Assembly (NCBI RefSeq): GCF_052425735.1 | Contig: NC_135759.1 | Span: 33,852,001 to 33,916,000, forward strand | Direction: 5' to 3' | DNA from: Oculina patagonica | Lineage: Eukaryota | DNA length: 64,000 nt | Shown here: one piece after another, positions 4,570 through 41,532 of the stretch | How the letters are laid out: each line of letters starts with the position of its first letter | Numbering within the stretch: position 1 is the first letter of the stretch | Position numbers and translations under genes: made by a program | Notes under the pieces: generated by a model | Databases searched by the model: none | What the model saw: the letters and a program-made list of their open reading frames with translations, nothing else | Told to the model about the DNA's origin: nothing

Positions 4570-7500
4570 ATGGAAGCAGAAGGAAAAGATCAACTGGATT
4601 TCACAACGAAAATTCACGAGCGCTCGGAACAGGAGTTGCTGCCGATGAAGGAAGATGTAGCAGAATGGCTGTCGAGGGTTCTACACGAAGAAATTACAGC
4701 AGAAAATATCCTGGACTGTTTAGAAAACGGTGTCCTGGTTTGTAAACTTGCCCAGATTGTGCAAACAGCAGCCCAGGATTGCATAAAAGCGGGGAAATCC
4801 GTGAAACCCTTAGCCCCGTTCTCATCGAAATTTCACCAGAATGCGAAAGCTGGGACTTTCTTTGCACGGGACAACGCAGCTCATTTCTTGCAGTGGTGTC
4901 GGCAGATCGAGGTGGAAGATTCTGTCCTGTTTGAATCGGACGGATTGGTTCTTCAAAAGCAGCCAAGAGAAGTGATTTTGTGTTTACTTGGTGTGGCAAG
5001 AGTCGCTGCAGACTACGGAATAGAGCCACCTAAACTGATTAAGCTAGAGAAAGAAATTGACGACGAGATCGCTGCTGAAGAGAAGAAACCAGATTTAAAA
5101 CCAGCTAAAAAGGAAAAGAAAGTATCGAAAGCAACAAGTATTGACGCGGAGGTAAAGAATCAATATTTTACTTTCTATCTTAATATCAATCGAGGTGTGT
5201 AAATATTTCTTCCCTGACAATTAAGTAGCTAGTAACTGCACATTTAATAGGTTTCGTGTTACAATGTTTACACAGATTAATTATGAAACATCACCTGCGG
5301 TTAACGACTGATTTCCAACTGTTTACATTTTTTTGTATAGCTCATTTCAGTTATAAAGCGAGGACATTTTTGCTGGCGTGGGTATTGTTCTTACAAATAT
5401 TGAAGGAATGCAGCCCACTTAGATTTTAATGGCTTACACAAGTGCCAATTTTAGCTGTCAGTTAGTTACTGTTGGAGATTAAAGCTGTTTACAAAGTATT
5501 TCAGACTAGATATTGCAATGTTATATCTGATGTTGTTTATGGACATAAAATTAATTTAGATCTTTAATTGAAAAAAATTGGTAAATTTATGTAAAACTCA
5601 TGCTGTTCATAGCTCCAATCCAATGCACCATATGGTTAAGTTGCTAATTAAATTACAGCATACATACAGGTGACTGCAGTCATCTGCCATGAATTGAATC
5701 ATTGCTGTAACTGGACAGTACACCTTAATGGCTTCCTGCTTGCTGTTTTGTGCTTGTAGCTCTTACCAATTTGAAAGAAAAAAGAATTTATTACAATTCA
5801 GGTGTAATTGAGGGTGATAAAGTTTTTGTGAACAGTGAATGTACTGTCCCTTTCCCCTGTGAATGTGAAATGGCTATTTTTTCTGACATGTACTAACACC
5901 CTGAAACAACGAAACGAAACCACCGAAATGAAACGACCTAAACGACCGAAACGAAACCGCCGAACAGCCGAAATGAGCAAAACAAAACGAAATCACTGAA
6001 ACAAGCAAAACCCATTACAATAAAGAGCTAATTGTAAACAGGCTAACCGGAGTGCATAGTAGGCTAACCTAAGTGATAATAATAATAATAAAGATATTTT
6101 AGAGGGAGCCCTAAANNNNNNNNNNNNNNNNNNNNNNNNNNNNNNNNNNNNNNNNNNNNNNNNNNNNNNNNNNNNNNNNNNNNNNNNNNNNNNNNNNNNN
6201 NNNNNNNNNNNNNNNNNNNNNNNNNNNNNNNNNNNNNNNNNNNNNNNNNNNNNNNNNNNNNNNNNNNNNNNNTAAAAAAAAAAAAAATAATAGGCTAACC
6301 AGAGTGTATAGTAGGCTAACCAGGGTGTATAGTAGGCTAACCGGAGTGTATGGTGGGCTAAACGGAGTGTATAGTACGATAAGTGGCTAAAATCTTGAAG
6401 TTTTGCTTGTTTCGGGGAATTTGTTTCGTTTCGCTCGTTTTGGCCATTTCAGTTGTTTCTGCGGTTTCCTTTCGGTCGTTTCGGCAGTTTCCGTCGTTTT
6501 GTTTCGGTGGTTTTGTTTCGTTGTTTCGGGTTTTAGTACTTGCCATTTTTTCTCATGAAATATGATTTTGTTTCAAGCTGTGGACCGTGAATCAACTTTT
6601 TTTTCCACGAGAATTGTGAAATGACTTCTTTTTTCTCATGAAATGTGACTGTAAACCACGATTTACATTTATTTGGTTTCAGTATTTTCAGTTATACATT
6701 TACCGGTAGCTGTTGCCAATTTGTTTTCAGGTTGCCAGGCTTGCTGCTAAGTACAATGTAAGGATTGAGAGAATAAAAGAGGGAAGGTACATTGTGGATG
6801 GAAAAATCAACATATTTGTCAGGGTAAGAAATAATGTATGTCTGGCTCTGGTGCTCTATTATTTCATGACAAAAAAATTACTCAAGATTACTCTTTATAG
6901 GGTCTTAAGCTAGGGAGGGGGAGGGGGTGGCTGGTTTACACAAGTGGTGCAAACGCAATCACTGATATACAAGCACAAACACAAGGAAAATCACTATTAT
7001 CTAGCACAATGCAAACACAAAATTAATGCATGGGCAAGGAATGGAGAATTGTCCATTTTTTTGAACCTGGCTTCCGTTTGCATTTACACTTGCTTCTCAT
7101 TATGCAAGCAGAAGTGCAAGCAAATGAATTATAAGCATGACCTGTCCTCCATCTTGGAAAAAGACGTCAACTGTATCTACATATCTTATGTTCCTTCTGT
7201 TTGCATTATATGTGTACACGTCTCTTGCATTTGTGTCACACAGGTGAACCAGGCTTATGTGTTGTCTGTTCATTTTCCTTGTGTCTACAGATTTTAAGGA
7301 ACCATGTGATGGTGAGAGTTGGTGGTGGATGGGATACATTGGAGCACTTTATCAGTAGGCACGACCCTAATAAGATTGGAAGAATTTTGACTTGTAAGTA
7401 AAGCTGAAAATATATTTATTTCCTCAGCCTTTGACTTTGGTTATTTTTTATTTAACTTTTCATTGCATTGATTATTCTGATTGGATCTTGGCATACTGGA

Positions 7501-21510: not shown

Positions 21511-24500
21511 TCAGGTTCTGCCTTGACTTGGCCTTGGATTTGACTACACAGAAAAATAATTATTTACGTTAAGGAGGTAAGGTGGACTGATCCTTGATTA
21601 GAAAATACCTTGTGAGTATGTACATGCTAAAAGTCTGTTTCCATAGCTTTAACTTCATAGATTACTTTTGTTTTTTAAGGCTTTGATTGGTTTGTTTGTT
21701 GGGTTTTTTTTTTTTTTTTTTTTATAAAATTTTTTTTTTTTTTTTTCTTGGGGAAATATTTTTGCTTTCTCCCCTGGGGCCGCCTTTTTTTATTACTCCT
21801 TNNNNNNNNNNNNNNNNNNNNNNNNNNNNNNNNNNNNNNNNNNNNNNNNNNNNNNNNNNNNNNNNNNNNNNNNNNNNNNNNNNNNNNNNNNNNNNNNNNN
21901 NNNNNNNNNNNNNNNNNNNNNNNNNNNNNNNNNNNNNNNNNNNNNNNNNNNNNNNNNNNNNNNNNNNNNNNNNNNNNNNNNNNNNNNNNNNNNNNNNGGG
22001 CTCCCCCCCAAATATTTTTTATTATTTAATAGAATTTGCTATATATGTTGATGCTTAATTTGATAATGATATATCTTTCAATGGCTTTTCTCATTGTCCC
22101 ATTTATGTTTTAACTATAACACAGAAAATCAAACGAAAAGACCAATTCTGACCTTTCCAGTCATTCTAGCCATTCCTTCTTTAAGTTGTGAGAGATCTGC
22201 TGATGAAAAACTACCAGAAGCACCTAAAGAAAATACAGATGTAATGTAAATATATTATTAACCATTCACTCTTTCTGAACATTACAGTAGTTCTTCATTG
22301 TCTTCAGTAAACATGCTTGAAGTTAATATACTGAAATAAATTCTGCCAAATAGTAATTTGTTTTATTTTGTCACATAAATGCATTACCGGTAATAGTGTA
22401 CGTCATTAGAGATTTCTTACCTGACCGGGAAGGTCTATCATCATCATTGCCAAAGAGGTCTGCACTAGAAAGACTGTTAGATCCTTGAAAGCGATCCAGC
22501 CGAGACTTGATGGCATACTCCTCCTAACATAACAAAAAATACAATGTCAGTCAAGTGTTTTATGGCACTGTAGTTGTAATCTGTAAGTCCCAGGTTCAAG
22601 CCCTTTATCCTGCCACTAGCTGGGAACATTAATTTTATTCTTCTAATTCAGTTTCTAAGTTCAACTCCTTAGCCAAGCCACATCATGTTGCTTATTACTA
22701 ACTGGTCAGCCTTTTGCTGGTTGGGTTTCTTATCTATGCGAGGTTTGTTTGAAATATTGCTTCACATGCCACACCAGTCACTCAGCTGTAATTACTCAAG
22801 TGTTTTTTTTAAACTATGGTAAAACCCTTAAAGTGGGAAGACCACATTCAGTACTTAGTTTACTATACCTGATCTTGATTTCCATAAAACTGAGCTGAGG
22901 AAATACTCTTGGCATTTCCAAACTTTTTTTGAGCTTCACCTGCACAAAAAGGCACATGTTTGTAACTTAGAGAGAATTGGTGTTGTTGTGACATCCTTAA
23001 AAATTTATGAAAATAAGCCCTCCCACACCAAAAAAACAAGCCGACAAATTAAGCCCCCCAGAATCTCAGTTGCAAAATCCTTCCAATATAAAACAGACTT
23101 TGCAAGCCACCCAAATATAAGCCCATGGATGTATTTTTAGATTTACCCCTTAAAGGACTATACCACCTTTGTATTTTATGATGTTAAGTTGCTCTCAGAG
23201 ACTTGAAATGCTCAATTAAGATCTTTGGAACTTGTTTCAAGTTTTACTGTCTATAAGCAGTTTTATGACTTGCAAACACTGAGTTTTTCAGAAGCAACAC
23301 TCTTTCCAAAAATAAAGTAAAACAGCCCAGGTTTTATTGCCTCAATTTTTCTACGGTCTGATCATAGATTAGTAATCAAAAGAAAAGCTGAAGAACAAAT
23401 TTATCTTTTACCTGAAGATGACAAATCTACAGGTTCTGGTTCTCTTCTTCTGTCAAACCTTAAAACAGAAAAAAAAAAACAGTGAAGCTTAATTATAATA
23501 GCAACTTGGTGCAAGTATGACAAGAAATGGCAATTTTAAATGTGGGCAGCACATGCATAGAACTCAGAAATGTTAAAGGAAAGCACCATGGTGTAGTGGT
23601 TGGTGCATCGTACTCTGGCTTAAGAGGTCTTTAGGCCTGGCTAAACTAGGAAACATTGTGTGGTTCCAGAAAATATCCATACCCACCACACAAAGGGATT
23701 TGCCCTATGACCCCCCCCCCCCCTCTGGAAATTCCAATTTAGCTTTATACATTGCCTTAAAGTTTTGGGTCTTTGTGTAAAAAGATTAATATTTGGAAGA
23801 AGAAAAAAAACAAGGAAAAGGAAACTGGAAAGGAAAAGTGGTTCTACAGTAATGGACAACACCAATAGCACCAAAAAAATTTTTTTTTACCTGTCTTCAC
23901 GGCTGGATCGCCTTTCATTAGAGAAAGATGAGCTTATTTCATCCCTACACAGCAAAATATAAAAGATTGGTTATAAAAGTGGTCCAAATATTTAAACCCT
24001 ATTCAATAACAAACAACTCTAATGATCACAGACAAAACAGTTTTATTAATCTATTGTACATTTGCAATTAATTTCCATTTCGCCAAACTCTAAACTAAGG
24101 TAAAGGTAGTTAAAAGTCTTTATGGGGCCAAGTGGCACAATTCTTGCCAGAGCTAGTTTCCTGGTTCCTGGAGCATTACACAACTAGAAGTATTTAGTAA
24201 GATTGTTGTTTTTTATGTATGTTTTTAGAAAAAAGTGGGTAAAATGTTATGTAAATGGTTGGAAAGGAAAGGGGGAGGGTAAAAAAAGAAAAAAAAAATA
24301 GAAGTATTTCTATTCCCCCCCACCCCACCCCCCTAAATGGGATACTAGTCCACTACAGGGTTGCTCCCCAGCATTTTAGTTCAGTACCCATTTATACACA
24401 TGGGTGGACAAACCCGAAAATCTCTCAATCATTTCTTATACAAAATCTCAATGCTATACCTATCTCTATCTCTGTCCCAGGAGCTTGATCCAAATGGACT

Positions 24501-27140: not shown

Positions 27141-30100
27141 TTTTTTTTTTTCTTTTTTTTTTTTCCTATTTTTTAAATTTTAAATTTTCCCCACCATTCT
27201 TTCCCCCCCAATGTGCCAATGTGTTAAAAACAGTGTGGAAATTTTCTGATGTTAACCACGATGCTGAAACTACCAACAGAACAAAGACACTGCTACTTAT
27301 CATATGAACACTAGCATTAAGAGAACTGGTGCACATAGAGGGTCAGGTCGAAGACTGCGTGCTGGTGCGTCCACGCAAGTGAGGAAGCGCCACCTCGGCC
27401 GGAGCCCGGCGGACGACCGCGCCGTGCCAGCATGGCCCGAGTGAGGTACTGGAGTGTCTGTGATGGCAGAGTTTACTTGGTGGTGGTGTTAGGACACTCA
27501 GTTGAAAACTGCCTACAAGCTGAGTACAAGTGGAAAAAAAGCAGCAATCTGCATGTTCATACTGTATAATAATTACGTTGTGGTCCAATTTTACCCTTGG
27601 TACAATTCGGTTTTTTCCTTTGTTTTGGTTTATGGTAATATATAAGAATGAATATAAAGCAAAGGGAAGTAGAAAATTGTACCAAGGGTAAAATAGAACC
27701 ACAACATATCTACAAGTGAATACTAACCTTGATGCTTTGGAGGTGAAACACTAAGATCTTCCATGTTTTTGCTAAGATCATTGCCTGTAGAGAAAAAGAA
27801 ACACTCTTGGCATTCTTAAATGCATAAAGGAAGGGCTTAATGCAAAATCAAAGGTAAAAGGGGGAGTTGACAGAGCTGCTATTATAAAGATAGGTACAAT
27901 GGGAGAAATAAAAAATGTAACAAAAACAAAAGCTCAATCTTCTTGATGGTCATGCAACAATGTCAAAAAGGCAACAATAAATGTACTGAGTCAATACAAA
28001 AACAAAGTGATAGAACCAGGGGTTGTAAGTTCACATATCTACCTCAGTTTTCTCCCCATTAAAACACATCTGAAATTTAATCCAAAAACTTCCATACTAA
28101 TGGCTTAGTTAGCTCTACTTAAAACCACACAGCATCTCACACTTGTTGTTATTTCTATTCAGATTCTATTTATTCACATTACACATACCAGGGTTGTTTC
28201 CATTCTTTCCATTTCCATTTGTTGGTATCACAACAGTCTGCTGAAAAGACTGGCTCTCTACCTCCTTGAAGAAGTCATGATCTTTGCGATCAGGAGAGTT
28301 TGGTGACTGCGGACCATGGTGAGTATCCAAATGAAGCTGAAAAAATTAGAGAAAATAAAGTTAACTGCATAGTCTGTGGCAAGTGATCCTAGATAAAAGA
28401 TATGAATAATACAATAAATATAAAATAGTAATTCTGCATACATGTACATTTGAATGTGTACAAAAATTCAAAGCTGGGCTTTGGCAGAGCCCAGGTGCCA
28501 CAGCTGACTTACTTTTGTTTTGGGCAACTTGTATAATTTTGCTATCATGAAAGCTTTAGAGCTGGACACTAAAGATTTCTTACATAAGAGACTTCAGGCC
28601 CCTGCAATTATTCTGTTTTTTTTGTGTTTGGTGTTGTTGGGTTGGGGAGTTTTTTATCCCATTTTAGATATGGCTGAGTAGAATAAAGATTTGGAATGAA
28701 ACATGCCCAACTAGTTCATGAACACTCTATCCAGCTCTTACCTGGGTTCCATATTGTTGGAAAGCTCTTGCTGCTAGTGTCGCAAGCTTCTCTCTGTACA
28801 TCTGAGCCACACGGCTAAAAAAAATAATTAAAGGAAAAGTCAATAGTTCACCCAAAGAAAATATAAAAAAAATACATTGAAAAGATACATCACCACATCA
28901 CTTTTCATTACAAATGTTTTGCAATCCTAACAAATTAAAAGCTCGATCCTTGCTGATATATTTTTTTTCTTGAAAAAAAAATGTAGTCTACTCAATAACA
29001 AACAAGGCATTTAATTTTTTTTATTTACCCTTTATATTTCGCACTTGTGTCCTCAGTTGAGAGACCATGCTGTCTAAAGAAGGCATTCTGAATAAAGAAT
29101 AAAGGAAAAATACAATAGTTGCTATGGAGCAATATAAAACAAGATTCTATGATTCTTGAAACCTGAAAACTCTAATCTGATTGGCAAATAAGAAAAACAG
29201 GGACAAAAATATCTCAAGGAATTATTGTGGTATAAAATAATACTGCTTAGAGCATGGCTGAAAGCTACATGTACAGTAACACTCATTTTACAGCACTAAG
29301 ATGCTAATTACGACATAATTAAGAGAAAGTTACAAAGTACACACACAAAAAAAAAATAACATTACTCTTTTCTTTTATAAAATTTCCTTAATGTCTAGCA
29401 AAACAGAATGAAAAAAAAAATGCAAAATGAAAAGTATTGACTCAGATGTTGAGACATATACAGTAATTGCTGTTTGATTCTTGGATGTTGAAAATATTGA
29501 GTCTCACTTAAACCAGAATGGTATTGCAAAAAAATTATTTCACATTTATGTCCAAGATAACAACTTCAAATATCCTTCTACCTCTTAAAGTCTTGATTTG
29601 AATAATACCACAGTTTATTTCAAGGTGTTGTGGTTACCAAGTAAAATCTTGACAATCTGAAATTGTCTGCAAAATACCTTTAATGATTTGTATTGTTTAG
29701 CCTTCAAACAAGTTACCGGTAAGTTAGCAAACTACTTGATCACATAACAGATTTTGGAAAATTATTTCTAGCAAATATTAATATTTAAAAATTTTCACTG
29801 GTCAACAGGTCATTTGGAAAATGAATAATCTTATTTCCATGTAGAAATGAAATTGAACTCAAACAGCTGGCTTAACAAAACTGGTCAAACGAAATGATGG
29901 CTACAGATGTGCTTTAAGTCATTTCCCCGCGAAAACAACAGTGGTTTTAGAAAAACAAAACCTTGGATACAGAACCACTGAATGAAACAAAGCAATCAAC
30001 ACTGCCCGAAATAAGCATCACGAAATTATAGTCTAAAGTGGATTCCCTCGAAAGAATTGTTCAGTAGCACGAAATAAAAAACAATAAAACCCATAATCAA

Positions 30101-30788
30101 CGTTTGAGGTTCCATAAAGCATGTAAAGGCCCGCTGGAAGGTTAAAAGAAGAAATGACTCCACTTATAAATTCAATTAGAAGGGTACATTATTTTTTTCG
30201 AGAACTGAAACTTTTAGTGTCTTACCGCTTTCGCGTTACCACCAACTTGCATTGCTCTCAGCTGTAGCCATGTCCAATTTGTATCCAGTTGCGTCGATCT
30301 TTAACAAATGAATGAAACGTTGAAGGAAAGTAAGTATCATTTAATTTGTTGCGTGCGGTACCAAAAGAACAAATGATTCGAAACAAAATTCGACCGGGAA
30401 ATCGTCATGGACATCTACACCACTCGACCACAATTTTTTTGTGTTTTCATGTTAGAATTACTCTTTAAATAAGACAAATATTCCGACAGTACATATGGGA
30501 TATTGTTCTTTACCTAATGAAAGTTAAGTGAACACCAAGAGATCGGTGAACAGCCGAGCAATCAATACATAGAAAAACTCCATAAGTTACTGATGCCCAC
30601 GTTGGATTGTTATGTCCGCAATCAAAGCAAGTCTGAAAACAAAAGAGGACTTATAAAGTTAGACAGCAGTTGATTAAGAACAGAGGAAAATGGTTTTCAT
30701 CAAAAATCTTTACCTTATTATCAGGGAGGGATTTCAAGCGCTTGAAAATAATGGCGATGTCTTTCGGGTTCACCACCGCATCCGCCAT
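21511..30788 (-). CDS. ARFGAP2: ADP-ribosylation factor GTPase-activating protein 2/3 (Glo3 type); 3' end uncertain because of the N gap
   Basis: Exons 30788-30714, 30632-30514, 30298-30226, 29087-29029, 28814-28742, 28336-28189, 27784-27728, 26600-26545, 25861-25826, 25558-25185, 24957-24916, 24507-24460, 23944-23891, 23458-23412, 22939-22869, 22523-22421, 22223-22153. ArfGAP zinc finger CFDC...[33 protein letters not shown], and Glo3 repeats [11 protein letters not shown] / [11 protein letters not shown]. The last exon 21543-21511 is speculative. ARFGAP2 and ARFGAP3 cannot be distinguished (probable co-ortholog). Confidence 0.9.
25994..26054. repeat. (ATT)n microsatellite
   Basis: Direct reading. 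Confidence 0.9.
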
Positions 30789-31056: not shown

Positions 31057-32840
31057 ATGCAATCCCATGCTCACAGTCAACTGAAGCACCACATTCAGCA
31101 GCCATTATTCAAGCTGACTACAAGCTCAGTTTCTCAATCTCCACAAACATCAGGCTCGTATTTTGCGAGTCCAAATGTCAACAAATCTGCCCATCATGGA
31201 CATCAGTTGAATATCAGACCTGTAAACTCACCCTCGAATGCCTACTTTCGTCCAAACACTCCAAGGCAGAAAGAAAAAGGTAGCTGATAAACTTTATTTT
31301 ATTTCTACATGCTGCTCAGAAGTTTTTTAGACCAGAGTAGACAGAAGAAATCCGGGCGTTTGTTTTGAAAATTTTCTCAAAAACTAAACGCCAATGAGGC
31401 TTGATTACACTGAACCATTGACATCCTTCGCAAGTTACTACAACAAATTATGAGGTCTAAGAAAGTAAACTTAACTACGGTAATTATACTTGCAGAAGCA
31501 GAGAAAGTGGAAAAAGACAGAGCGCAATCAACAGAACGAATACATTCCTTACATACTCGCCTTCATCAAGAAGCAGAGAAAATAAGAAAATGGAAAACGT
31601 CAACAGAGATAGAAATAAAAGAAAAGGTAAAATATTTAGAATTTTGTTTTTTTGTAATTTAAACACAAGTTATGTTTTGTTATGTTATCTTTTTTAACAG
31701 ATTTTTTATTTGCTCTTAACTGGCTTTCTTACGGCTAAATCCTTTCATGTGATTTCTTAACTTTTTTCTTTTCCCAATTTTACAGGAGAAAAAGCTACAA
31801 GAAGCTGTGCAAACAATAGATTCTCAGAGAAAGTCAATTCTTGATTTACAGGTATAAACAGCTTTGTTTTAAAAAATTGCAATTTTCTAGTGAAAGTGCA
31901 GAGATCACAGTATAAATCTTTATATAAAACATCAAGTGCAGAACTTATAAGCTTGAAGACTGGTATTGAGTATCACTTTATATGTCCTGTAGATATCTGT
32001 TGGCTGATAATACAAAGAGACATTCTATATCCTACGATCGGAAAACAGCAACTCACCAGTTTTGCCAAGAAGCCAAAGCGATTTTTATCACAAAAAGTCC
32101 AAGAAAATCAAATACGGAAAACAATACTGAATTAATTACCAGAGGTAACAATTCTTCTTAGTAGTGTATAAACTGGTCGTGTTTTTTATTCTCAGTTTCA
32201 GAATGAAAGTCTCAGCTCAAAACTTCAAGAAGAGCTTGCAAGTAGGGAGGAGGTTGAACACAAGTAAATTAATACATCTTGCAGTTTGCTCAGTTTGTCA
32301 AGTAAATTAATACATCTTGCAGTTTGCTCAGTTTGTCTAGTTATCTCCTTTACAACTATTTCACATTCAAAGCCAATGAAATAACATTTATATTGTTCAT
32401 CAATTTTTTTTTATTAATTTTCAATCGGGTCCACATTGCTAACAGTTAAATCACTGATATGTCTACCCTGTATAAATATTTCCAGTTATTATTGTACTTT
32501 CTAGAATCGTTGCTACCCGAGACATGTGCAACGCACTGAAAGATCATGTTGCAAAGGTGGAGGAAAATATACATAAAGGCAAGTTTTAAGCTGAAATCGT
32601 AGGCGGATTTAAGGGGGAGCTAGAGCCGACGGAGGTCGCAGCCCTTCTCAAGTGCTTCCAGAGGGCAGGGAATAGCATCTCACAGAACCAAGATTTTTAA
32701 GTTTTCCTGAGGGATACCCCCGGTCCCCTAAATTGTCGCAACCCCCTGTTCCTGAATTTCCTGGATCTGCCGTGCTAGTTAAAAACTGTATTGTTATCGT
32801 CGCCGTCGTCGTCATTGTTATCGTTATCATCATCATCATT

Positions 32841-38800: not shown

Positions 38801-41532
38801 CATAATTTTCAGTTACTCCAGGGAGCCGGATTGAAATTCATATTAATACTGTAATGTGCATCTTATCACGTTTTCTTGATAGTTGGAAAATGAAAAAATT
38901 GTAGCCCAAAAGGAGCGAGAGCTGGAACTCTTGCGTGCTAAAGCAGAGAAAGAAACTCAGGAGCAACACGTAAGTACCAAATAAGTGAGAAGAATTGTTT
39001 AACATCCGGCAATCTGATACGGATTATTGGTATAGTAACTTAGATGTAAATAATTTTCTCCTTTAATAACGGTAGTTGATTTTCTTACAGGAGAAGCGAC
39101 TTATGGAAGCCAAGGAGCAAATCGAAAAACTTGAGAGGGACGCGAACCGTCTAAAGAAAAATCAGGTAAACTTCTCATTGTAGTTAATCTACGTAAAGGT
39201 TACACGATGCCATAGTTAATATGCTTCCATCAAGTTAGAGAAACACTGGTGGAAATTCAGTTTGGAGAACTCGACGCACTTATGGGACCTGACTCAACTG
39301 CAGCTCGTGTTTCCTCAGTTCTTGTTTTCCCAAACATCTACTCCTTCTACCATAACTCTATGGAACCCTAAAAATATTGTTAATTTTTGTGTTGGCTCAC
39401 CGCAGGAAAAGGATAAAGAGAGACTAGAGCGTGAAAAATCCGAAGCCGTTAATACACTGACAAGGCAGCTGGAGGCTAAGGTAGGGCACAGAAGTGTTTT
39501 ATAGAGGTATTATCAGCAACATGCTCGCGTGCAATATTGTGAATCCCATTTCTTTCTTCGTGATAAAACGGGCATTTTATGCATATATGTAATATTTCAT
39601 CCGTAGAATAAAGAGATCATGCTTCTGCAAGAGAAGATTGCCGAGAAGGAGCTCAAGGTATGAGGAGTTACCTTTTGATTTGAGTGTTTCTTATTCGCAG
39701 TCATTTGACAAGATTTTTGTTGTACATTCTAAATACATCTCATGCAACTATGTGTAATAAAAATGTCATCAATCTCATAATCTGCTGAGCGCCCTTTATA
39801 TCAGCAATATTTAGTATGCTTTAAACCTGAAATTGATCAAGAAAATTCTTCCAAAAAAGGTAGAAATTGGCATAAGCTTTTTTATGAGAAGCTTATTTGC
39901 ATGAACTCGGAAATCCCCATCAGGAGGATTAAAACATAAAATTTTCATTGATCCGTGATTCTATTCTTTTCATCTAAAGCCTCTAAAAAGCCCGAGAAAG
40001 CCATCTTCTGAAGTGCAAATAACGATACCAAAACCAATGCATCAAAACATGATGGAAGCGACTCCTGAAGATTCCGCAGTTGTTCCCGAAACTCCAAAAC
40101 AGCCTCGTGGTATACTCAAGCAAAACGACGTCTATCAGAAAAAGAGAAGAGTAGCTTTTGCAGGCTCAGACGAGCAACGTACATCATCAGAAGATGAAGG
40201 GGACGAAAAACAAACGTTAAAGGTTACTAAGATTTTTACTTTAATTCTTATTTTTCGCCTCTGTCAATCTCATTTTGTTTTTTCTAATTTACTACTGATA
40301 CATGGCATATGAACTGCGGTTTATCATACATAGCTTGAAACAAAGGGTACTAAATCCGAAAGGAAAAGAGGCAGCGAAAAGGAGAACCAAAAGAGCACAC
40401 CAAGAGCAAATGTTCGATTTTCTCCAAAGCCAACTTCTTGGAACAGTGAACCCTCACTCGAAAAGAAATCCCCATTTACAGAAGTACAGAAATTGAAACA
40501 AATTCCAAGAGGCAAGCCTATGGTTCCACAGAAACAGAAGAAGGTACTGAAAAATAGTTTTACAACAGCAGTAGTTTTCTTTACGAGAGGTATTAAAATC
40601 TTTTTGACTTGCCTTCATCTGGATTGAAAATAAGTTAATTTGCATGTAATTTGTAAATGTAATTTATTTACCCACGTGACACGGAAGAGCTCAGGAGCTC
40701 GTAAAGACGTGTACTACGTGCATCCAAGATCGAATTGGAATTTGGAGTGTTGGTTTTTGTGGAGGGAGGAAAACCGGAGAACCCGGAGAAAAACCCTCGG
40801 AGCCGGAACAAGAACCAACAACAAACTCAACCCACATATGGCACCGGGCCGGAATCGAACCCGGGCCACATTGGTGGGAGGCGAGCGCTCTCACCACTGC
40901 GCCATCCCTGCTCCCACCATGTATGAACCTTCACCAGTTTTTACTCTTTAGTATATGTTTCAGTTTCAACTCTTTCTTTCTCATACAGATAAAAATCCAA
41001 AGTGATGATTCTGAGGAAATGGCGAAGTTCAAGGAATTGTTCCCTGATATGAAAAGTCCGGATTCCCTCTACGATAAATCTCCGGTAGGTTAAGAAGACT
41101 TGGTGTCGAGTTCAGTTATTCAATGTACAAAATCGCAGCTTTCAATTGATCACCAACACACTGATACGTTGCCTCTCATCCTTAATTTTACATGTTTTTG
41201 AAAGTAACTCCCTGTGCTGAATTAGTACTTCAGTGATGGGTTCAAGTTAGTATAGTTCCGGCTTATTTTAAGTAATGCCCACTACCGATGAACCGGTGGT
41301 GTATCTGAGCAACATCGCTAAAATTACTTCGAACTCGTGATTAAACAAAATTGAGTTTGATGTTTCCTTTTTTTAGGGCAAAGCACGTGGCTTGCACGAA
41401 ACGATGAAGCCTCCATTCAAGAGCAAAATAACTAAAATTAAACCACTTTCGCGTAGGAAGAAAGACAAGCAAGAAAGTACTGCTTGGTTTGACTCTGATA
41501 CACTCTTTGGGTTCGCAATGGATGATGAATAA
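31057..41532 (+). CDS. SYCP1: Synaptonemal complex protein 1 (transverse filament), ~1104 aa, 35 exons
   Basis: Exons 31057-31279, 31496-31626, 31786-31851, 32196-32263, 32505-32578, 33159-33217, 33447-33516, 33608-33681, 33858-33966, 34142-34236, 34379-34563, 34790-34857, 34983-35044, 35153-35269, 35397-35501, 35610-35713, 36092-36134, 36333-36407, 36505-36575, 36720-36753, 36962-37024, 37235-37297, 37420-37482, 37560-37622, 37753-37815, 38262-38324, 38532-38642, 38883-38969, 39091-39165, 39406-39480, 39607-39657, 39980-40222, 40334-40543, 40989-41084, 41377-41532 join into one open frame. LHQEAEKIRKWKTSTEIEIKEKEKKLQE...QRKSILDLQFQNESLSSKL...ATRDMCNALK matches the conserved N-terminal SYCP1 motif. 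LEKYKLENEKIVAQKEREL matches the C-terminal coiled-coil motif. The tail is basic and S/TP-rich. Confidence 0.9.
32793..32876. repeat. (ATC)n microsatellite
   Basis: Direct reading; explains the spurious poly-Met ORF. Confidence 0.9.
38047..38170 (-). mobile_element. Degraded Penelope-like terminal fragment with a mutated hammerhead-ribozyme core
   Basis: The minus strand reads ..TTTATGATGGTTTCCGCTCAGGTTGTCGAAAC.., resembling the CTGATGA..GAAAC minimal hammerhead with the CUGA core lost. Confidence 0.4.
40651..40915 (-). mobile_element. tRNA-derived V-SINE-like copy in a SYCP1 intron
   Basis: Closely similar reverse complement of 21073-21336, including the 3' tail. Confidence 0.8.

Follow-up and report, generated by a model that had tools for sequence, protein, structure and literature searches.

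Introduction

The N-terminus of KNL1 carries a SILK motif and an RVSF motif in the disordered region of a chromosome-bound scaffold, and recruits protein phosphatase 1 (PP1) against Aurora B. Its two motifs lie about 30 residues apart, and Aurora B phosphorylates a serine in both of them, which releases PP1. In RIF1 the order and the position of the motifs differ among lineages. PP1 also acts on meiotic axes and on pachytene exit, as seen with Red1-Glc7 in yeast and LAB-1-GSP-2 in C. elegans, and inhibitors of PP1/PP2A drive premature desynapsis. The C-termini of SYCP1, the transverse filament protein of the synaptonemal complex, are located in the lateral elements, at the chromosome axis. Here we analyze a 64,000-nucleotide stretch of the coral Oculina patagonica (contig NC_135759.1 of assembly GCF_052425735.1, positions 33,852,001 to 33,916,000, forward strand), called the window below and numbered from its first letter. 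One of its exons probably encodes a bipartite docking site for the PP1 catalytic subunit in the disordered C-terminal tail of SYCP1, a reading based on conservation and on a modeled complex.

In the crystal structure of the Inhibitor-3 complex, a single PP1 molecule engages two motifs of the inhibitor about nine residues apart: the SILK-type SLTIK (residues 27-31), which occupies the SILK pocket, and the RVxF-type KVEW (40-43), which occupies the pocket for RVxF (PMC10066265). The linker between them, LRKRKP (32-37), is a nuclear localization signal (NLS) and lies loosely over acidic patch 2 of PP1, formed by E54, E56, D166, E167, D242 and E287 (PMC10066265). The chromatin protein RIF1 is reported to bring PP1 to DNA through its conserved SILK/RVxF pair (PMC4448129). 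A 2025 review mentions PP1 in the control of yeast synapsis and states that no specific protein partner has been identified for the C-terminal domain of SYCP1 (PMC12706140). Full-text literature searches linked SYCP1 to neither PP1 nor RVxF nor PPP1CC and turned up no transverse filament protein with a SILK-RVxF pair, and phosphatases go unmentioned in a preprint on the SYCP1 interactome. SILK and RVxF are textbook motifs; what is new is SYCP1 as their bearer.

Current understanding of the stabilization and disassembly of the synaptonemal complex centers on kinases, and little is clear about the phosphatase that opposes them and what anchors it. If the end of the transverse filament that faces the axis indeed carries a PP1 dock, the SYCP1 tail would have a partner and a mechanism, and a meiosis-specific member would join the few scaffolds that combine SILK and RVxF to hold PP1 (KNL1, RIF1, Inhibitor-2 and Inhibitor-3).

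A candidate docking site in the tail of SYCP1

The first-pass annotation of this DNA had reported tandem SILK and RVxF motifs, flanked by TP and SP sites, in an SYCP1 tail at 40109-40159, and the translation bears this out. These positions read in frame on the + strand as GILKQNDVYQKKRRVAF, inside PRGILKQNDVYQKKRRVAFAGSDE, in the order GILK, a six-residue linker and KKRRVAF. The flanking sites are S4-P5, T28-P29 and T38-P39 of the exon, with more SP sites in later exons. Throughout the six-frame open reading frames (ORFs) of the window (62,764 residues) there is one ordered pair, namely this one. Its parts are as follows.

40082-40159, + strand: whole conserved block V35-F60 (VPETPKQPR, GILK, linker and KKRRVAF), including the conserved T38-P39; drawn from the invariant columns of alignments A1/A2
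40109-40120, + strand: SILK-type motif GILK, exon residues 44-47; translation, conservation and contacts in the complex model
40121-40138, + strand: variable linker QNDVYQ; low column conservation
40139-40150, + strand: basic cluster KKRR, exon residues 54-57, the front of RVxF and NLS-like (K-K/R-x-K/R); 98-100% conserved
40145-40159, + strand: RVxF motif RRVAF, exon residues 56-60; fits [KRL][KRSTAMVHNQ][VI]{FIMYDP}[FW]
40160-40207, + strand: acidic, Ser-rich run AGSDEQRTSSEDEGDE after RVxF; acidic/Ser character kept in all homologs, letters vary

GILK fits the pattern [GS]IL[KR] and stands N-terminal to RVxF, 10 residues ahead of its V. RRVAF agrees with the RVxF consensus in a disordered region, with KKRR before it and AGSDE..SSEDEGDE after it, and KKRR also fits a monopartite NLS, as a pattern match only. 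The arrangement fits PP1 docking sites because SILK lies N-terminal to RVxF, basic residues come before and an acidic Ser-rich run after, and the context is disordered. The RVxF-PhiPhi extension, a hydrophobic pair 5-8 positions past RVxF, is absent from AGSDEQRTSSEDE, which follows RVAF. The tail exon has no match in PDB or the ESM Atlas.

That the gene is SYCP1 follows from its CM1 exon, 31414-31638 on the + strand, which matches Pfam SCP-1 (PF05483) at CM1, a motif close to the start of the coiled coil (E 2e-5; 23.3 bits against a Pfam cut-off of 23 bits) and also the human SYCP1 chains 6F5X/6F62, which are N-terminal coiled-coil structures (E 8.5e-5).

31507-31629, + strand: CM1 motif of SYCP1; Pfam SCP-1, 6F5X/6F62 and 64% identity to the CM1 exon of the related contig L090

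By these homologies the multi-exon, + strand gene that holds the motif exon is SYCP1, and its layout is that of SYCP1: a long central coiled coil, then a basic, S/TP-rich unstructured tail. The approximately 8 kb that separate CM1 from the tail (about 31.4 to 39.7 kb) are occupied by small exons rich in K, E, Q and L. The tail past the coiled coil has 234 residues, among which P, S, K and E are abundant, and it contains basic clusters as well as several SP/TP sites. The joined model of spliced exons starts at 38883, and exons further upstream were judged from composition.

Conservation of the motif pair

Of the 15 true relatives that an exhaustive HMMER search with the motif exon returned, almost all are ORFs of exon size on coral-like contigs; two profile searches raised the number to more than 60, of which 51 distinct sequences were used for column counts. 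The homology references are unspliced and the matches span 0.55-1.75 times the query length, so that what is compared are exon-sized ORF fragments and one partial model from Acropora digitifera. That model, P0012, is the closest named relative, with 60-65% identity over the motif exon. Since homolog identities run from 30 to 95%, an explanation by near-identical strains is excluded.

The first-pass annotation had named loss of the motifs in related species as the result that would speak against a docking role. Our data show that the pair is kept, P0051 (V to G in RVxF) being the sole exception. Over the 51 distinct homologs, the first SILK position is G in 63%, S in 35% and R in 2%, the I and L are present in 100%, and the last residue is K in 94% and R in 6%. 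The first K of KKRR is found in 98% and the following K-R-R in 100%. RVxF is likewise conserved among these orthologs, with its V in 98% and its F in 100%, and with A, V, I or M, never S or T, at position x. The six linker columns, by comparison, have a commonest residue at 35-80%, and the linker itself is six residues long in corals and 8-10 in distant relatives. Columns of the exon that are invariant in the A1/A2 alignments are V35, P36, K40, P42, R43, I45, L46, K47, K55, R56, R57, V58 and F60. The distant group follows the pattern KTPQRSILK, 8-10 variable residues, KKRRV[VAI]FA and then an acidic Ser-rich run. From these alignments, SILK and RVxF are the best-conserved residues of the SYCP1 tail across scleractinians and several much more divergent lineages.

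Several contigs carry enough of the gene to identify the distant sequences. Exon for exon, the 9.7-kb contig L090 is colinear with the gene in the window, starting with the first coding exon and continuing via CM1 into the tail; its CM1 exon is 64% identical to that of the window and scores 27.6 bits against SCP-1. L091 and L092 (30% GC) hold coiled-coil exons, the motif exon and the last exon, and L097 and L098 have the tail and the last exon in common with them. On this gene structure the distant motif-bearing sequences are SYCP1 and not other PP1 partners.

Modeling of the complex with PP1

The genome has three PP1-type genes, recognized by STPPase_N matches at loci L007, L008 and L009, the last being the most divergent. 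All three are split into small exons, and a stand-in was therefore modeled, a complete PP1 of 328 residues from a metatranscriptome (L017:65-1048). The motif exon with this PP1 scored 0.83, compared to 0.04 for the best of three controls; of 78 solved complexes 51 attain this mark, and of 108 mismatched pairs 2 do. Contact agreement between runs was at least 77%, and the partner's predicted local distance difference test (pLDDT) value was at least 54.

In the model PRGILK (exon 42-47) contacts PP1 residues 49, 53-59, 86 and 114-119, which are the SILK pocket. RRVAFAG (exon 56-62) contacts residues 168-169, 242-243, 261 and 288-292 and is placed in the RVxF groove, with low expected error for the pocket placement. 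R56 and R57 contact 168-169 and 242, the acidic surface between the pockets (acidic patch 2), and for K54 and K55 the model shows no confident PP1 contact. The modeling check proposed in the first-pass annotation thus placed both motifs in the canonical pockets, a result that speaks for likeness and steric feasibility of docking and not for binding.

Comparison with described PP1 partners

The initial comparison of this pair had been with KNL1 and RIF1, which is fair, but by layout and spacing Inhibitor-3 is the nearer architectural match. Inhibitor-3 (PPP1R11) has the same succession of a SILK-type motif, a short basic linker and RVxF; the lysine of its SILK and the valine of its RVxF are about 9 residues apart, compared to 10 in SYCP1. 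The two differ in that the SILK of Inhibitor-3 is non-canonical whereas that of SYCP1 is canonical, with the Ile present, and in what comes next: Inhibitor-3 inhibits PP1 by means of a CCC motif that occludes the active site, whereas the SYCP1 tail has an acidic Ser-rich run instead. As the tail has neither an inhibitory element nor a PhiPhi motif, it is more likely to belong to a targeting subunit.

As in KNL1, SILK precedes RVxF in the SYCP1 tail, and both pairs lie in disordered parts of scaffolds bound to chromosomes. In KNL1, however, the motifs are widely spaced and contain the serines targeted by Aurora B, whereas the SYCP1 pair is close. The usual Aurora-type off-switch is missing in SYCP1, since no homolog has S or T at x and the first SILK residue is G in most corals. 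RIF1, a chromatin protein, likewise has a conserved SILK/RVxF pair and differs from SYCP1 as a host protein and in the process served, which is replication timing and telomeres. Red1 and LAB-1 share with the proposed system the presence of PP1 at meiotic axes, but these recruiters are axis or arm proteins and not the transverse filament.

Alternative explanations

Several observations weigh against a PP1 dock. P0051, in which G replaces the V of RVxF, is the one homolog that lacks the full pair, and a few others have I or M at position x, outside the strict consensus. The SILK of Inhibitor-3, which is the non-canonical one, contributes almost no affinity (PMC10066265). The modeled PP1 is heterologous, at 97.5% identity to the coral's own central exon, and its high score may reflect memory of solved PP1-peptide complexes. 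RVxF-like strings are frequent false positives, arising in 7.8% of shuffled tails, and this, together with SILK-type strings in 1.1% of the shuffles and the fact that the first-pass annotation drew on a scan of much sequence, is what could be said for the view that two short, degenerate patterns were matched by chance in a tail rich in K, R, S and P. We consider chance very improbable: over 200,000 shuffles of the 234-residue tail, an ordered pair [GS]IL[KR]..RVxF within 40 residues appeared in a fraction of 1.55e-4, and the pair is the best-conserved part of the tail over the 51 distinct sequences.

The conservation also exceeds what PP1 docking needs, at K54, K55 and the upstream VPxTPKxPR, and we therefore believe that another function overlaps with the site. 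The question is whether such a function could replace the dock. The block might be mainly a classical NLS that binds importin-alpha, with the likeness to SILK and RVxF incidental, a reading that we judge unlikely. KKRR fits the K-K/R-x-K/R pattern, its 98-100% conservation goes beyond the needs of RVxF, K54 and K55 stay without confident contact in the model, and the equivalent basic stretch in Inhibitor-3 is that protein's NLS. Yet an NLS gives no reason for I, L, V and F to be invariant within a stretch that is charged and disordered, or for the two motifs to keep their order and lie so close together, and other basic clusters in the tail could do the same work. Because NLS and PP1 docking coexist in Inhibitor-3, an NLS here would more probably supplement the dock than replace it. 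A dock for some other axis partner (for example SYCP2/SYCP3, a HORMA protein or cohesin), or a DNA-binding surface of the tail, seems to us just as improbable as a pure NLS. The C-terminus of SYCP1 has to be anchored at the axis and shows DNA binding in vitro (PMC12706140), and anthozoan conservation extends upstream of SILK (VVPxTPKxPR), past the PP1 motifs. However, no known axis-binding motif has such a form, every conserved hydrophobic residue coincides with a PP1 motif position and is put into a PP1 pocket by the model, and distant relatives alter the upstream flank (KTPQR) yet keep SILK and KKRRVxF.

Proposed role in synapsis

A PP1 dock in the tail remains the reading that we favor, and it would make SYCP1 likely to be a new PP1-targeting protein. 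The earlier suggestion that this transverse filament may recruit PP1 directly to the chromosome axis gains support from conservation, the flanks of the motifs and the complex model; PP1 binding itself, the substrates and any effect on the synaptonemal complex are what we infer from them. GILK would fill the SILK pocket of PP1 and RRVAF its RVxF groove, and KKRR would overlie the acidic surface between the pockets and probably serve as a nuclear import signal too. The ability of KKRR to serve both the acidic patch of PP1 and nuclear import could account for its invariance.

SYCP1 would then act as a PP1-targeting subunit that brings the phosphatase to the axis and chromatin during assembly of the synaptonemal complex. 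Docked PP1 could keep the S/TP-rich and acidic, Ser-rich tail and nearby axis proteins dephosphorylated, a state that would favor DNA binding and a stable complex, and would oppose the kinases behind disassembly (CDK, PLK, Aurora and CK2-type). Rising kinase activity would later outcompete the docked PP1. The conserved TP upstream of the motifs and the Ser/acidic run downstream are candidate regulatory sites. The proposed dock fits both the desynapsis caused by PP1/PP2A inhibitors and the action of yeast PP1 at meiotic axes.

A wider version of this proposal is that SYCP1 is an ancient PP1-targeting subunit, with a dock that is ancestral in animals and of which vertebrates have only a weakened, RVxF-like remnant in the tail. 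We regard this extension as tentative and rather doubtful. Its vertebrate part rests on a KKxRK[VM]AF-like string presumed to be in mammalian SYCP1. If it holds, it would supply a direct mechanism for synapsis-dependent dephosphorylation of sites in the axis and the tail, and would explain premature desynapsis under PP1/PP2A inhibitors.

Exon structure and expression of the tail

The motifs sit in an expressed, spliced exon of SYCP1. Two public runs, X1 and X2, contain spliced contigs that skip introns at GT..AG sites, and the motif exon is covered by X1 record 3 and X2 record 12. It is a single copy in the 529-Mb genome. The exons of the tail end are listed below.

38883-38969, 39091-39165, 39406-39480 and 39607-39657, + strand: last four coiled-coil exons; X1/X2 joints, continuous frame
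39980-40222, + strand: tail exon with the motifs, 81 codons, phase 0; joint 39654>39977 (cut +3) in X1 and X2, AG/GT boundaries
40334-40543, + strand: next tail exon, basic and SP-rich; joint 40541>40987 in X1 and X2, homologous to P0012 and P0022-25
40989-41084, + strand: tail exon with the FKELFPDMK region; joints 40541>40987 and 41083>41376, matches L090
41377-41532 (stop after 41529), + strand: last coding exon, with the end WFDSDTLFGFAMDDE and stop; joint 41083>41376

Joined, these eight exons from 38883 to 41529 and the stop make one open frame, all in phase 0. Direct GT..AG joints in both runs support the acceptor of exon 39980-40222 and four of the seven other tail-end junctions; two further junctions are each shown by one run alone (X1 or X2). 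The donor junction 40222/40334, which is missing among the joints listed, is assigned from its GT/AG sites, the frame and the Acropora digitifera model. X4 and X6, from organism C, have contigs that span the region as unspliced DNA of a relative.

The 51-nucleotide, phase-0 exon 39607-39657 (NKEIMLLQEKIAEKELK) was seen solely through the spliced contigs and was overlooked by ORF scanning. In exon 40334-40543, a block SPKP..W followed by KLKQIPRGKP..QKQKK is common to Acropora and L090. NVRF in the same exon was considered as a second RVxF and rejected, as it is off consensus and L090 has NIRQ there.

Other features of the locus

The extreme C-terminus of the protein, W-F-D-S-D-T-L-F-G-F with acidic residues, is encoded at 41485-41529, and has counterparts at L091 2612-2791, L092 1750-1929 and L097 14506-14667. 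The last exon of L091 and L092 ends in W-F-E-M-D-S-I-F-G-F-E-D, matching the end in the window, and W[FM].xD.xFGF is kept in P0012, L091, L092 and L097, with W[FM]ExDxIFGF[ED] in the most distant relatives. This conserved end of SYCP1 is a second candidate short docking motif.

Similarity between L090 and the window also extends upstream of SYCP1, where L090 149-250 and 1275-1418 correspond to window positions 29008-29085 and 30540-30638; this suggests a conserved neighbor or a shared promoter region. Runs of N lie in the window at 6116-6272 and 21802-21997.

A dispersed repeat of about 265 bp occupies 40640-40950, in the intron between exons 40334-40543 and 40989-41084. A first look at the genome gave more than 3,300 candidates for it, the scored copies are 92-97% identical, and contig depth over it reaches thousands. 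It is absent from this place in organism C, as X4 and X6 skip 40642-40918, and it has no Rfam match. The repeat looks like a young insertion of the short interspersed element (SINE) or miniature inverted-repeat transposable element (MITE) type.

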